Origin: Podarcis filfolensis
Taxonomy: Eukaryota
DNA length: 64,000 bases
NCBI GenBank assembly: GCA_964270895.1
Contig: OZ185442.1
Reading direction: 5' to 3' (one strand)
Position 1 is the first letter of the stretch. Every line of letters starts with the position of its first letter. The position numbers were made by a program, and so were the translations under genes. A model generated the notes under the pieces. The model did not search any database. It was not told where the DNA came from and worked only from the letters and a program-made list of their open reading frames with translations. Shown piece after piece: positions 6,446 through 23,600 of the stretch.

Positions 6446-6514
6446 TCAAAATGTGCCCAATCGGCTCACTCCCCTAACCCAGAGCCATTCTGGAATGATC
6501 TGTGCAAAAAAACC
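6446..6514 (-). CDS. HSDL1: HSDL1 last coding exon
   Basis: Acceptor ctcttgtcttccag; [22 protein letters not shown] then TGA. Confidence 0.88.
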   Translation of the reverse strand, partial: GFFAQIIPEWLWVRGVSRLGTF

Positions 6515-9500
6515 CTGGAAGACAAGAGAGGAAACACAGGTTAGAATTAGCACATAAACGTATTCCTTTGGCAACAAGCAATAACAAGATTAAAATATCA
6601 GCATGAAATAAAACCCAAGAAGATCTAACATGAAGAGTCTCCTTCAGACAGTGAATCATCCACATCTCCCATTCCTTCCTTCCAGTTCATAATATAGGAA
6701 GCTGCCTTCTATAGAGCCAGACCATTGATCCATCTAGCTTAATACTGTCAGCACTGGCTGGCAGTGACTCTCTAGGATCTCTGGCAAGGGACATTCCCAG
6801 CCTTGCCCGGAGATTGAACCTGAGACCTTCTGCATGGAAATCACATGCTCTGCCACTGAGCTATGACTCTTCCCCCCTCCAACTATTAATTCTCTTTAAA
6901 AAAAATTTAAGGGATGGAAGTGCAGCAGAAGACACAAATATGCTGGTTTTATACTTTTTTAAAAAAGAACTTTGGGGAAGTTTACTGCTTGAGCACTTCA
7001 GCTATAAAAAATGTTAAAACTTAATAAAGCCAACATTTTGCATGGGTTATTGCAGCTAACCTGGCGTCCTTGTCTATCCCACCTCCTGTAGGCTACCATA
7101 AGTATCGGGTGGTGCACACACCCCTGGTCAAGCACCTGGCATTACAATGATGACAGGTGACCCTTTTTGCCTGCACCAACAATCTGGTGATTAGCACCAC
7201 ATAAGCCCCTTTGGTCCAGCTATGTTCTACTTACCCTGTACCTGATGTTATATAGGACATCAAATGTGGGCCCAATGGGACCTGGGTGACCTAAGTAAGC
7301 CTATGAGCCAGAAGTTCCTCACCTCTCCTGTAAAGCTTTGGACTCTGAACACTGTCACATGTTCTGTGAATCTCCCCACCCTGTTGCGCCATCCTTGCAT
7401 TTGCCAGTACCTTCTGTGGCAAGATTGGTGGCTGAGCATGCGAGGGTCTTCTATATGTGGTGGCACCCCATAGGTGGAACTCATTGCCCTAAGATGTTCA
7501 GCTATCTTCCTCTTCATTTGCATTGCAAACTGAAAACTTTCAAGTGCCCATTACTGGTCAACATATTGAGTACTGCCCTTTGTGTTTTTCTTCATTTGCT
7601 GCTGCTCCTAGCTTGATGATCTGTGTTTTAATGGTGGGGCATGTGTTGTTTGTATGCTTGCTTTTAGATTTGCAAACTCTTTTGAGCAACTTCCTTTAAG
7701 GAGGCGGAAAAGTAGGGTGTAAATGGTTCCGAAGAAATAAAAATGTATGCAGTGCAGTACTAAGAGCAGTAACTGATGCACTAAGGCAGGTGTAGGGAAC
7801 CTTTAGCCCTCCAGGTGTTTCTGAACTACGGTTCTCATCATTCCAGACTATTGGCCATGTTTGCTGGGGATGGTGGGAGTTGCAGCTCAGCAATATCAGG
7901 AAGGTCAAAGGTTCTCCACCCCTGCACTAAGGGAAGAGATGCATTTTCCCACCCACAAGATACTACACAAAGTACCACAGTCTCTGGGTTCAGAGTCAAG
8001 ACAGCTTCATGAAAGAAAAATATGTTGGCCTGCAACACAGAAAATCATACACAGGTTGCAATGTAAGAACAGCACTTTGCTTTCTGTGGTTCTTTTATTT
8101 CTTTTGTTAAGAAAATGAGAATTAAACAAATAAAACTCTATAATAAAATAAACAAAATAGAACACAGCAATAAAATTAAGCAATTAGGTTTCAAGAGCAT
8201 TAGCTGACAGTCAACACACAGGAAGCTGCCTTATACCGAAGCTAGCTCAGTATTGTCTGCACTGACTGGAAGTTTCAGAGGCAGACAGTCTCTCCCAGCT
8301 TTATGTGGAGAGGCTGGGGATTAAATTTAGGGACCTTGTGAAGGCAAGGCAGATGTTCTACCACTGAGCTACATCCCTTCTCCAAGATCACGTTCCCCAA
8401 GATCATGGGTGAACATTTGCTTCAAAAGGCTCATTAAAACCAATCCAGGCTGCATGGTTCAGCCACCAAGTTAAGAAAAGTTAAGAGAAAATGTAACACA
8501 GAAGCAGCTGAATTAATGATATTACCTGGATTGAATGGAGGGAGTATCCTGGAGTCCTTCTGGATAGTCCAAGGGTGGCAATAGCCTGGTGCGCGTATTC
8601 ATCTGCAGAAGGCACAAACAAGCTCTTTTTGGATAACGTGGGGCTGTATTTTGACATGTTGGTGCAGACGAAAGCTGGACATAAGCACTGAACAAAAATG
8701 CCTTGGGGAGCATACTCATAATAAAGCGATCGGCTGAAATGGTCCAGGTAAGCCTGTCAAGGTTAAGAGCAGACAATTAAGATTCTCTGGATTTAACATG
8801 GGGAAAAGGTGTGGAGAACAGACATTGGCAGCTTAGACAACATCTCTTGACTGACGCATGCAAGGCGCAACATAGATGGCTATGGAACAAAGCCTTACCA
8901 AATCAGCACCCATCCCCAGCTCTGTATGTCTTGCTGACTGGCCAATTGCAACTTAATAATAACTGCTTTGGCATAGCTTTGCACAACCAAGTACCCTCCA
9001 GATGATTTGGACTTCAATTCCCATCAGCTCCAGCAGAAACATCTGAAAGACACCAGGTTGGGGAACACTGCTACTGCACATTTAGGCTACAGTTATCTTG
9101 GGAGTCAGTCCCATTGAACTCAAGCAGGGCTTACCATTAAGTAGACATGTACAGAATTGCTCTGTTGGTTCCTTTACGAAACACACACCAGCGCTTTACC
9201 ATTCAGCTAACAGAGCAATCCTGTACATAGTTCCTCTTTAATAAGTTCCCTTAAATTCCCATGTAAGTGTGCATAGGGTTGCAGCCTCAATTTATAAAGC
9301 TGCCTTCACTGGAGCAAAGTAGAACGCTTAAGCCAATACATTCCTGAAGCAGAAAAGCCGCCCTGGCTGCTCCTGAACCCTTTAAATTTTATCCTGCCTT
9401 CCATTCCTGTACATCTCTGAGCCGGATTGTAGGCATCTAATTCAACCCTGCCAGAGCCTTTGCAGCAAGGATGAGGAATCCTTTCCAGGCCAAGGATAGT

Positions 9501-11045
9501 ATATCCTCCATCCAGGCAAGCAAGAGGCATTATCAGACTTCAAGGACATGTTCCAGCTGTTTTAAAACACTTGAAGGGGGTGCAAAGCAGGGCTACTGCG
9601 CGATGGTCTGAGAAGAGTTCTGAGGGCCAGAGAGCTGCATACTTATCCTGGGACCTGAGGTTTCCCACTCCACCTTCAAAAACTTCTAGTTCTCAAAATC
9701 CTTATCCACAGAAACAGAAAAAAACATTTCCATGGAGAAAGGATGCATACCTATCTCTTAGAAATAATGATTCTGATAAGATAGGGGGTAAGAAGCCTTT
9801 CTAGCCTGGCAAGCCAGATTGTTATCTCCCTCCCCCTTTGCAGGCCATGTTTGACAGGTGGGCAGATGCCACAGCAGCCTGTTGCCTGCATGGGTCTTCA
9901 AGTGCCCTGCACTTTGAACATGCAGTGATCAGCCAATTGCTGGATCTTCAGAAGCCCCGTTCACTGCACAGGGCAAAACAGAGCTTTGAAAGGGACTTTG
10001 CAGGCACCATGGTAAAGGGCAGGTGGCTATGGCTTGGCTGAAATGGCCTCATAGGCCAAACAAGGAGACCTTGTGGGCTTGATCAGGGCTGCAGGGCTGG
10101 AGGTTCCCCACCTGTCATAAGAGAACACATATATTTTTATATTTTGAAACTCACCTTGGAGGCTGAATATGCCGTCATTCGTGGGGAGGGGTGGTAAGAG
10201 GACATAGAAGAAACGTTCACGATAGCGCCTTTCTTTCTCTGAACCATTCCTGGCAACACCATGTGCACCATCATATTAGCTGCTCCAATATTGATGTTGA
10301 TGAGATCCCAAATTTTATCCTCTGTCAAATTGGCAAAATAATCCGGGTGATCATAGAACACTCCAACGTTATTCACCAAAATGCCAGTCTCTTTGCCTAG
10401 CAGGGCCTTCTTGATGGCAGGGTACACCTGGCGGCCCCTGCTGAAATCTGCCACAACTACTTCCGTTTCAACCTTGTAGGAATCCTCAATATCTTTGGCA
10501 AGAGCTTCCAACATCTCCTTGTTCCGGCTTATTAAGACAACATTCACCCCGTGGCATGCCAACTCTTTAGCATAGGACTTCCCGATGCCTGAGGTACAAC
10601 CTGGAGCAGATCGAGAGAGCAACAAAGATCATTTTTAGACTCTGAGACTAAATGCATTCACTTAGTCAACCGATAGTTGTAGAGCGTTTACAAAGGGCTT
10701 ATGCATTTTTATGTCAGTATGGGGTCTTCCTAAAAAAAAATCTCAACAACTTTGCAGGTGTCAGGAATTTTAATTTTTGAAATATGGCAACCCTAGAGAA
10801 TCTGTGTGCTCCAACTGTCTCTTACCTGTTACAGCAGCCCAGCTTCCATACAGTTTGACTAAATCAGGCCTGCTGACCAGCCGAGGAATGAAATACAACC
10901 TGATCAGGCTGTACGTGTTGCTTGCAACAGTGAGGGATGTCTTCATTATGTAGAAGGCTCCAATGAAAGCCAATGTCTCTATGACACAGCTGCAGGCCTG
11001 CCCAATCTCTCTGAGCAAGAAGGAAAAGCTGTCCACAGCAGCCAT
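6446..11045 (-). CDS. HSDL1: Hydroxysteroid dehydrogenase-like protein 1 (SDR family), 320 aa: join(10826..11045, 10155..10600, 8526..8753, 6446..6514)
   Basis: MAAVDSF start, TGCTSGIG Rossmann motif, [22 protein letters not shown]; exon sizes 220/446/228 equal the recalled human sizes; lies between MBTPS1 and DNAAF1 as in human. Confidence 0.95.
6694..6874 (-). mobile_element. Squam3-like SINE
   Basis: Same head and tail motifs as the 4999 copy. Confidence 0.8.
7787..7924. mobile_element. hAT-type palindromic MITE
   Basis: TIRs caggtgtagggaacc / ggttctccacccctg; perfect 8-bp TSD CACTAAGG at 7779..7786 and 7925..7932. Confidence 0.85.
8219..8379 (-). mobile_element. Squam3-like SINE with internal deletion
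   Basis: ggaagctgccttatac...tctaccactgagcta motifs shared with the other copies. Confidence 0.75.
8526..8753 (-). CDS. HSDL1: HSDL1 coding exon 3
   Basis: 228 nt, [14 protein letters not shown]...[16 protein letters not shown] bounded. Confidence 0.95.
10155..10600 (-). CDS. HSDL1: HSDL1 coding exon 2
   Basis: 446 nt, (G)[14 protein letters not shown]...RMTAYSASK, donor AAG|GTGAG. Confidence 0.96.
10826..11045 (-). CDS. HSDL1: HSDL1 coding exon 1
   Basis: 220 nt, [15 protein letters not shown]...YGSWAAVT(G); acceptor at 11060..11061, donor CAG|GTAAG. Confidence 0.96.
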
Positions 11046-11953
11046 GGTAAAACAGATGTCTAGAAGGGAAGAAGCAAAAGATGTTTGTAAGGAAGGAAGT
11101 ATGTATTTTTTCCATTGCTTCATTTAGCCAAATCATTGACTTCATATTCCAATAGGTCATAAGATGCTAAAAATAAAAATGACCATTTCATTTTGTTTCA
11201 GGAAAACCCAAGAGCATCTGCCATATATATCTATCATTCTTCGATTAACATAACATATCCCAGTAGAAGTCAAAAGTGGTTGATAACATTCAAAGCACAA
11301 TGAAACAATAATAACAACAACAACAATGATAAACCTCTCAAAAAACAACAGCATGGTAAATAATTAAAACAACCAAGTCAAGATGTAATGCAAATATAAA
11401 TCTAAAGTTTAAAGGAGGATGAGTATTGGAGGAGGGAAGTCACATGGGTGTATTATTTACAATTCTTATTCTTTGCTTCTCTTTCTTTTCTTTTTTGTAC
11501 TGTTTTTATTTTTTGGGATATTATATGTATTTTTTGTCAGCATGAATAAATACTGTTTGTCTGAAAAAAAACAACAACAACCAAGTCAGCTTAAAATACC
11601 AGGGAAACCCCACCAAACTCACACAGTCAACCGTCCTGAACAAAACTGTCTTCATCTGTCTTGCAGCACTGCAGAATGGGATGGCTTTACAAAGCTTTGC
11701 TTTCAGAAAATGCCATTCCAAAATCAAGTATGGAGACTCTGGCTCATGTGTTGCTATTTTACTCTTTTCAATGAGACTTCCACAAAGAGCTTATTACTCC
11801 ATTGCCATTATCATCTCACTGATTTTTATTAGGCCAAATTTTATGCAGCCTTCCTCCTTACAGTCTCAGACAATCTGGCAACAGCAAATTCGGCAAACAC
11901 AGCCAATACCAATAGTGATGCTGCCAGTCAGGATAGACAATAATGAGCTAGAT

Positions 11954-20600: not shown

Positions 20601-23600
20601 AAAATCAGCTGTGAGAGGTTCAGATTTTAATAGGAGCAGTGGCAGTGGGGAAAGGGGTGTTTAACTCATGGTTTTCCCAATCTGAATTGCTCCTCCTCTC
20701 CCACAGCTGTTAACCCTGCAGGGGCAGGGTGTGGGGGATACTGGTTCAGTGTTGCTTTCAATGTAACTAACTTTCAGTGGAGTGTATTAGCTCGATTGGG
20801 CCCCTGGATCTCCTTACCTGCAGCAAAAATGAAAGCAGGCTCTGCTTCTTTTTTAAGGTCTTCTTCAAATAACAGTTGGCTAGTTGGTTAAGCCAGTATT
20901 TGTGTACCTATGTTTAAGTAATTTTATGTGTGCAATGCAGATATCACCCAACAGAGGGACTTATTTGTTCATGCATTTTGCCAGCTATGACATTCATGAG
21001 TACTTTCTGTTGTGTTTGTAGTTCTGAAATATGGTCCATGTTGCCATTGTGTTTACTGCATTTTTCTTCCTGCAGGATTTGATCGTCTGGAGAACCTGGA
21101 AGAATATACAGGATTGAAGTGCTTATGGCTGGAATGCAATGGCTTGACTAAGATTGAGAACCTGGATGCACAGACAGATTTGCGTTGCCTTTATCTGCAG
21201 CTGAATTTAATAAATAAAATTGAGAATCTTGAACCTTTGGAAAAGCTGGACTCTCTCAACCTCAGCAACAATTATGTCAAGACAATTGAAAACCTCTGTA
21301 AGAATTCTAACTTCACTGAAATAAGATCCATAACCTGAACACAGTGTTATTTAGTGGTGTTACTGTCATACATGTAGGGGCACCAGTGTGTTAAAACTCA
21401 GTGCAAAGCATTTCCACAGCAATTTCTGGTGGCTTCTGTGGAGGCAAATTTTGTTGTTGGCATCTGTCTGTCTTGAGAGACAATGGTGTCCGCCAATGGG
21501 GGTGAAGTCAAATCACTGTTAGCAGCACTGAAGTGACCTCCCTGGGTTGTAAGCCTGGATGGTGTCTATGGAGGTCCAGGGCTGTGCAGACAACAAGACT
21601 CTCTCCTCCCCCATCAGCCTCTCCCCCCCCCATTAGCCTCATTGATGTGCTTCAAAGGAAAGCAGAGCAATATGCACTGAGTCAAAAGGAGCAAGGAAGA
21701 ACATTTTCAGCACTGAAAGTCTTCAGTGCAAACTTTTTCTTTAAATTCCTAACAGTGGAGCGAGCCAGATTCGGAACCAGTCGGGTGTGGGGCATGATAG
21801 TGAATGCTGAAGCATTTTAACCCTTAGCTCCACACAGGGTCCTTATCTCAAACAAGCCCCTGTGCCTGTAATTTGTGAAGGGAATGACACAAGGATGGTA
21901 ACACAAGGGCACAAAATAAAACTTGCACATACTTCGGGCCTGAAAATGAACTAATGTCTATAGTCATATGCCCAAGAGAAGCAATGCTGCAGCCTCATCA
22001 TGAAGTGTATTTATTGATCAACTGCAGAGTAAGATTACTTCCCCCCTACATCTAATCTAAATTCCCCTTCTTGAAATAGACCCCTTGCCCCTTAAACTGT
22101 TGTCATCAGACGTACCTCTATACTTACATTTAACTAACAAGCATTCCTAATTACAGTTCTGTGGCCAGTTAACCTGGACCCCTATACTCTGGGACTGAAC
22201 TGGGCTTTGCGGTTCCAGTTTGGTATGACTGAGGACTTTCCAATGTTTCAGAGGACAATATGTGGGTGGGTGCATTTTAATCTTGTACAGTATACCCACA
22301 AGCAGAACTTTCTGAGAATCTTGCCCCTATGTCTAAAATGGCAACCTTGGTTGGGCTGTAATTGGTCCGGGTAGCGTAATCTTGTTGCCTTTGTTACGAT
22401 TCCTTGATTTATTTGGCAGTCCCATTCATTTTACTTATTCTAACAGTATCCTTACTTTTCAACAGCTTGTTTGAAAGTTCTGCACACTCTACAGATTGCT
22501 CACAATCAGCTGCAAACAGTTGAAGACATACAGCACTTACAGCAATGCCCAAGTATCAGTGTCCTTGACCTGTCTCACAATAGGCTAGATGATCCAAACA
22601 TTTTAGATGTCCTGGAGACCATGCCTGATTTGGTAAGCAAAGAATGACTCTTAAGATTTCTTTAACTGATCCACCATTTCTTAGGCACAGAATGATTCTG
22701 ATCTTACTGTGCTGTGGAAGGATATATGCTGTATCCAGTGCTTCAGGGACATTAACATGCCTTAATAAAATTTAGAGTCGGGTGGTAGGAGAGGGGTTAC
22801 TGTAATAAATTTGCATAATCAGGAAACAAAATCCTTGATGGGTTATGTCAATATGAGTATGCTTGATTCAGACCAGCCTTATGCAAGAAGAACAGGGGCC
22901 ACAAGGAACAGGTAGCAGGTTTAGCTCCTACCCCAGTAATGTTTCTGAGTTCACCTTTTTCCTTTCTTCTGCAGGAGTGAATGAGAAGAAGGTGCAGTTA
23001 CTTCAGTTATGCTTGCAGTGTTGCTATGGGGGTTAAGTGAACAAAAGTTTACTCAAAGCTGATCCTATGAAAATGATTTAAATAGATTTATATTCAACTA
23101 TTTTTAGTTCCAGGATGGCTTCAGATATTGTACAAAAATAATTTCTACTGTTGTATTTTAAATTGAAGCTGTTTTGCTTTTTTTTTTTATTGCAGCGTGT
23201 ATTGAACTTAATGGGAAATGAGGTAATAAAGAAAATTCCTTATTACAGGAGGACACTTACCATCAGATTGAAACATCTGACATATTTGGATGACAGGCCA
23301 GTGTTTCCAAAGGACAGGTAAAGTGGGAAAGGAGAGAGTGAAGAGATGACTAGTCCGAAATATTATTAGTAGCCTAATCAATTTTGACTATGTTGTCTGA
23401 AAAACGGATATATTAACAACTAACTTCATGGGGCTGTTATAATACACACACACACCAGTATGGCCTGTAAGATTCTGATCCTGATCCTAAACAAATTGCT
23501 TCAGTTCACAAATGTGACAACCCCCAAAGCAATCACTTCAGGAGAGCAAGCTTGTGACTGGGGCAACAGAGGTAGCACAATTTAAAGACAGTCTCATTCA

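Follow-up and report, generated by a model that had tools for sequence, protein, structure and literature searches.

HSD17B12 and HSD17B3 are active, Tyr-bearing classical SDRs that carry an N-terminal membrane anchor, reside in the ER and have known substrates. Together with HSDL1 they constitute SDR family 12C (PMC3184775), in which HSD17B12 (3-ketoacyl-CoA reductase) and HSD17B3 form paralogue groups separate from that of HSDL1. The features that set HSDL1 apart from these two are the C-terminal motif GYW.H..Q...PEWLW and, in human, its location: the human protein is signal-anchored in the outer mitochondrial membrane (bioRxiv 10.1101/2022.09.15.508165; 10.64898/2026.04.03.716438). The label "inactive" on human HSDL1 traces to Meier et al. 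2009 (PMID 19026618), and it covers only the substrates tested, as one paper cautions (PMC11209984). A full-text literature search for HSDL1 in combination with F218Y, with pseudoenzyme or with Phe-Tyr yielded nothing useful. The F218Y mutant of human HSDL1 is said to have gained activity in the 2009 work of Meier et al.

The HSDL1 protein of the lizard Podarcis filfolensis resembles the human one in its N-terminal anchor, the GxxxGxG and NNVG motifs, Asn177, Ser205, Lys222 and the residue numbering (320 aa in the lizard vs 330 aa in human). The two differ in that human HSDL1 has Phe218 and Ser73, whereas the lizard protein has Tyr218 and Thr73. Phe218 of the human protein, as stated in the sequence-only reading of this DNA, is indeed present in NP_113651.4. 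This substitution defines the human "inactive" class; the lizard protein lacks it, its codon 218 being a read-supported TAT that encodes Tyr. The sequence-only reading had proposed that a pseudo-enzyme conserved across vertebrates was reverted to an active SDR in this lineage, with a retained ancestral Tyr as the alternative. The account favored here, in which we have high confidence as a whole, is that the gene is a spliced, probably single-copy HSDL1 orthologue with an ancestral Tyr218 that did not arise by back-mutation of Phe, and that its product would be an SDR oxidoreductase.

The gene model was built using tblastn with Podarcis muralis HSDL1 as the query, followed by a check of the exon borders for splice sites. 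A product of 320 aa is encoded by four coding exons, all on the minus strand of the analysed stretch of 64,000 nt (further referred to as the window):

10826..11045, minus strand: coding exon 1, 220 nt, M1..T73 and the first base of G74
10155..10600, minus strand: coding exon 2, 446 nt, G74..K222, Rossmann core
8526..8753, minus strand: coding exon 3, 228 nt, A223..Q298
6446..6514, minus strand: coding exon 4, 69 nt, G299..F320 and the TGA stop codon at 6448..6446

The start codon is the ATG at 11045 on the minus strand, and exon 1 encodes a hydrophobic signal-anchor segment at the N-terminus. All splice junctions of the model are GT..AG, with the donor GTAAGA at exon 1 and GTGAGT at exon 2, the latter directly after the K222 codon. 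The identity of individual exons to P. muralis HSDL1 is 96–100% (tblastn).

Reads from four runs were compared over the interval 8400..11200. Two were DNA-type runs of organism A, one with 100% of the sampled words and the other an independent sample; the RNA data were a contig set and raw stranded reads, both from the related organism F. RNA depth over exons 1–3 was 63–137 reads (exon 1, about 83; exon 2, 89–137; exon 3, 63–90) and 0 over unique intron sequence. Two joints were each seen both in reads and in a contig, 8752->10154 (83 reads) and 10598->10824 (46 reads); both are CT..AC on the plus strand, that is, GT..AG on the minus strand. Further, 58 RNA reads continue from exon 3 into letters matching the beginning of exon 4. 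In this library, every first mate maps to the plus strand, which, as in most stranded libraries, indicates minus-strand RNA. The HSDL1 gene of the lizard is transcribed and correctly spliced. An antisense open reading frame at 10191..10400 on the plus strand was also considered and was rejected, given that the stranded RNA points to the minus strand.

At 10167..10169 no letters other than TAT were found in the four runs (two DNA-type, two RNA). The closest deviation in the reads lies at 10170, where 109 of 109 RNA reads have C instead of T; this change is synonymous (GCA>GCG, Ala217). The codon for Tyr218 is real and transcribed, and the TTT or TTC that the sequence-only reading had named as the mark of an assembly error did not appear in the reads, so that TAT stands.

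Past approximately 11061 on the minus strand, 45 RNA reads extend into sequence outside the interval 8400..11200. Their continuation points to at least one non-coding 5' exon upstream, spliced to the first coding exon. Introns 1 and 2 contain high-copy interspersed repeats (8964..9057, 9434..9621 and 10732..10796), where the word depth in the DNA runs reaches thousands to tens of thousands vs about 31 in unique sequence; these repeats recruit unrelated RNA contigs.

In classical SDRs, a basic residue after beta-2 marks a preference for NADP(H). The positions of this residue and of the other cofactor and active-site elements in the window are as follows:

10827..10829, minus strand: codon of T73 of the TGxxxGxG motif, in exon 1
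10581..10600, minus strand: part of the TGxxxGxG cofactor motif in exon 2 (G74 in part, C75..G80)
10524..10526, minus strand: codon of Arg99, the basic residue after beta-2 (LISRN)
10362..10373, minus strand: NNVG motif, N150..G153
10290..10292, minus strand: codon of Asn177, the Asn of the catalytic tetrad, aligned with its Asn counterpart in the solved SDR 4bmv
10206..10208, minus strand: TCT codon of Ser205, the catalytic serine
10167..10169, minus strand: TAT codon of Tyr218, the catalytic Tyr of the SDR YxxxK motif
10155..10157, minus strand: AAG codon of Lys222, the final codon of exon 2

Read across the boundary of exons 1 and 2, the cofactor motif is T73-G74-C-T-S-G78-I-G80. The catalytic tetrad N177, S205, Y218 and K222 is complete, with the spacing S205-x12-Y218-x3-K222, and its residues align with their counterparts in 4bmv. 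The S-x12-Y-x3-K motif described in the sequence-only reading was thereby recovered codon by codon on the minus strand; the residue number 218 given there is exact (220 + 446 nt puts the Lys at 222), and the TGxxxGxG motif, the NNVG motif and the basic residue after beta-2 (R99) are intact, as it had stated. Exon 2 alone matches the Pfam family PF00106 (adh_short) with 106.5 bits (cut-off 26.6) and E = 1.6e-30, which excludes a chance open reading frame. It also aligns residue for residue with active SDRs of solved structure, namely 4bmv and FabG-type reductases. Structures of HSDL1, HSD17B12 or HSD17B3 were absent from the best 60 PDB sequence matches.

Taken together, T73-G74-x3-G78-x-G80, Arg99 and N150-N151-V-G153 make up a full cofactor site of the classical SDR type, and Asn177, Ser205, Tyr218 and Lys222 a full catalytic tetrad. 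By these motifs, the protein is predicted to be an NADP(H)-preferring oxidoreductase with an N-terminal anchor. The lizard protein keeps the hydrophobic segment at its N-terminus, and by homology with human HSDL1 it is probably located on the outer mitochondrial membrane. Candidate substrates suggested by the paralogues may be 3-ketoacyl, steroid or retinoid carbonyls.

The gene tree was constructed by IQ-TREE (model LG+C20+F+G4, 66 rows, rooted on the invertebrate rows) and follows the species phylogeny. The lizard HSDL1 is sister to that of P. muralis, an amphisbaenian row branches next, and the clades around the lizard sequence are the squamates (support 100) and the sauropsids (support 99), in which every row has Tyr218. 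By this placement the lizard gene is the HSDL1 orthologue (SDR12C3), in agreement with the name given to it from the sequence alone. The orthology call was based on the tree. Among proteins of close relatives, HSDL1 of P. raffonei (XP_053255469.1) differs from the lizard one by one residue at position 293 (Phe in P. raffonei vs Ser), that of P. lilfordi by four, and two P. muralis entries by five and eight; identity among Podarcis HSDL1 is 98–99.7% (P. muralis entry XP_028595378). HSDL1 of Lacerta agilis and Zootoca vivipara are 18–19 residues away. Other sauropsid HSDL1 (P. raffonei, P. muralis, Tiliqua, bird entries) have Tyr218 and the full tetrad, as the lizard does. Matches of lower score in the HMMER scan described below have 45–50% identity over exon 2 and a length of 310–330 aa, and probably represent the HSD17B12/HSD17B3 type.

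The codon of residue 293 (8540..8542, minus strand) lies within the conserved C-terminal GYW.H motif of HSDL1. The motif reads GYSLH in P. filfolensis, P. muralis, P. lilfordi, Lacerta and Zootoca, and GYFLH in P. raffonei; hence lacertids have lost the tryptophan that other vertebrates keep.

One HSDL1 locus per lacertid species was found, as counted in the 90% protein cluster only. Over the HSDL1 exons, the DNA word depth is the same as in the unique flanks (about 31–33 and about 14 in the two DNA runs), and this flat depth gives no sign of a collapsed duplicate. A paralogue or a processed copy was rejected on the grounds of the sister position to Podarcis HSDL1, the presence of introns, RNA splicing and the single-copy depth.

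Human HSDL1 is arranged head-to-head with DNAAF1. In the window, an SDS22-type LRR exon with three leucine-rich repeats and a Pfam LRR_4 match was observed at 21054..21332 on the plus strand, opposite to that of HSDL1 and about 10 kb upstream of where the latter starts. The cluster "Dynein assembly factor 1" appeared for this exon at rank 29 only in a protein-cluster search (Atlas). The exon is consistent with a head-to-head DNAAF1 neighbor, DNAAF1 being a candidate name only. Nine long open reading frames elsewhere in the 64,000 nt contained no Pfam domains, and no neighboring genes were found in the Rhineura HSDL1 locus with 10-kb flanks.

A HMMER scan with exon 2 over 1.84 billion representative proteins returned full-length HSDL1. 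Three further word-indexed searches used skink, mammalian and bowfin HSDL1 as queries, and one look-up of cluster members was added; about 280 HSDL1 sequences were aligned in total. In the first word-indexed search, 115 of the 121 clusters had Tyr218. All 117 sauropsids have it, including squamates (22), both tuatara entries, turtles, gharial and approximately 90 bird clusters. Outside sauropsids, Tyr218 was found in tetrapods (echidna, wallaby, opossum, two caecilians and a salamander cluster), in fishes (lungfish, coelacanth, eight sharks and rays, bichir, gar, sturgeons and paddlefish) and in all four invertebrate homologues. Phe218 is present in human, all other primates, colugo, tree shrew, rodents except Peromyscus (Ile218), cetartiodactyls, horse, pangolin, most bats, meerkat, panda, tenrec and anteater. 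Non-placental vertebrates with Phe218 are the newt Lissotriton and basal teleosts (eels, tarpon, bonefish, osteoglossomorphs). The remaining sampled teleosts (salmonid, cyprinids, characins, gymnotiforms) have Leu218. In bowfin, residue 218 is Ser, and the site is otherwise largely intact.

On the 66-row tree, residue 218 changes seven times overall and zero times on the path to the lizard. Given the absence of changes on this path and the all-Tyr sauropsid clade, Tyr218 of the lizard HSDL1 is, by this reconstruction, plesiomorphic and was never lost on its line. The mapping thus bears out the alternative of a retained ancestral state and goes against the proposed reversion: the lizard is placed within all-Tyr squamates, and Tyr is shared by 117 of 117 sauropsids and by almost all sampled vertebrates other than placentals and teleosts. 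Phe218 is derived in most placentals, human among them, and in one newt, and the decayed fish version is likewise derived; since Phe218 is confined to these and to basal teleosts, the premise of a pseudo-enzyme conserved across vertebrates did not hold either.

The teleost Hsdl1 is an orthologue of the lizard HSDL1 with the same overall length and C-terminus, but it is degenerate: residue 218 is Phe or Leu, residue 222 is Thr, GxxxGxG is replaced by G-A-S-E-A-x-A, and NNVG by NS/C-x-D. Teleosts have lost G78, G80, G153, Y218 and K222 and have retained the gene. Judged by these residues, the teleost Hsdl1 is a genuine pseudo-enzyme, in contrast to HSDL1 of the lizard. In the 2009 work of Meier et al., zebrafish HSDL1 reportedly has Phe218; the sampled cyprinids have Leu218 and Thr222, not Phe218.

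Tree lengths and numbers of changes at residue 218 were calculated on a 176-row FastTree. Sauropsids show zero changes over approximately 13 substitutions per site, and 54 placentals show five changes over 1.8 substitutions per site. The functional positions other than 218 are conserved in 93–100% of sauropsids: T73, G74, G80, N150 and S205 in 117 of 117, N177 in 116, G78 and K222 in 115 each, G153 in 113, N151 in 111, and R99 in 109. Placentals keep all these positions apart from Tyr218, with T73 replaced by Ser. As Phe218 is found in 43 placentals, the fold tolerates Phe; its absence from sauropsids then speaks for selection on the hydroxyl itself in this group. Considering this conservation, we regard it as fairly probable that the lizard HSDL1 is catalytically competent and has a real enzymatic activity.

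Several other readings were weighed against the favored one. The chance that TAT stems from faulty assembly or sequencing, or that the locus is a paralogue or a processed copy with the true orthologue elsewhere, is negligible. Nothing was found in favor of this reading; the codon was seen in all four runs, which represent two or more organisms and include independent samples, and introns, RNA splicing, flat single-copy DNA depth and the sister position to Podarcis HSDL1 all speak for a genuine locus. Only marginally less improbable is the reading in which an ancestor had an inactive Phe218 and a TTT>TAT back-mutation reactivated the pseudo-enzyme. The codons for Phe and Tyr are one transversion apart, and placentals seem to provide examples of such back-changes (Tyr of caniform carnivores and of phyllostomid bats among Phe lineages). 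However, Phe218 was found in none of the 117 sauropsids, Tyr is the residue in all outgroups as far out as the invertebrates, and the lizard is situated deep within an all-Tyr clade, so that an unobserved Phe stage would be required.

A more serious competitor, which we nevertheless hold to be unlikely, accepts the ancestral Tyr218 and supposes that HSDL1 is non-catalytic in all vertebrates. The protein would then act at the outer membrane, perhaps binding NADP(H), and Tyr would be kept for contact with the cofactor or for fold stability. The human protein is reported as inactive (title of PMID 19026618). The gene is kept intact in lineages that have no Tyr218 (most placentals, newt, bowfin and teleosts), the placental Phe forms retain every other motif, and teleosts lost the motifs and still have the gene. 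The loss of Tyr218 with retention of the gene implies a conserved role of HSDL1 that needs no tyrosine, and hence Tyr of sauropsids could serve cofactor binding or packing instead of catalysis. This is opposed by the fact that Phe, structurally tolerated in placentals, was never seen across the sauropsid part of the tree, while Ser205, Asn177 and Lys222 are near-invariant, the pattern expected of an active tetrad. The reported gain of activity by human F218Y would likewise imply that the site is otherwise competent.

Under the favored account, the lizard HSDL1 is an ordinary gene, already annotated in close relatives, and Tyr218 is the default state. The name "inactive" rests on the Phe of part of placentals and on the decay in teleosts and thus is not evidence of inactivity in sauropsids; on reptile and bird orthologues it is probably a name transferred by homology.

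Within placentals, Tyr218 was observed in three lagomorph genera, a shrew, canids, mustelids, pinnipeds and two phyllostomid bats. Their ordinal neighbors have Phe (rodents, primates, other bats, meerkat, panda, pangolin, horse and cetartiodactyls), and so do Xenarthra and Afrotheria. Changes at 218 were counted by hand on the accepted placental tree, giving about six with a Phe ancestor and about seven with a Tyr ancestor. Under either ancestor, phyllostomids and caniforms with Tyr are surrounded by Phe lineages, which suggests a minimum of two or three real back-changes from Phe to Tyr. Genuine back-changes of this kind probably occurred in mammals, and not in this lizard.

These observations allow a wider scenario, which we put forward tentatively and consider somewhat less probable than its negation. 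The Tyr-bearing HSDL1 of sauropsids, sharks, lobe-finned fishes, monotremes and marsupials may be a working NADP(H) oxidoreductase of the outer mitochondrial membrane, whose catalysis would have been lost independently at least four times (in placentals, either on their stem or later, and in a newt, bowfin and teleosts) and regained in some placentals. The regains, by Phe-to-Tyr back-mutation, would have occurred in caniform carnivores, phyllostomid bats and probably lagomorphs and a shrew. If the scenario is true, the lizard protein is a natural active form for finding the long-missing HSDL1 substrate. For de-orphanising HSDL1, natural Tyr218 forms (lizard, chicken, dog, rabbit) are better suited than the human protein, and the placental patchwork of Phe and Tyr provides natural matched pairs for comparison of activity.

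Minor deviations at other positions were seen in a few entries. Birds have Gly at residue 219. Tuatara is represented by two differing HSDL1-like entries, the second of which is without the SASK residues; python has Ser instead of the second Gly in GxxxGxG; and a catshark entry and a relative have Gln instead of Lys222.
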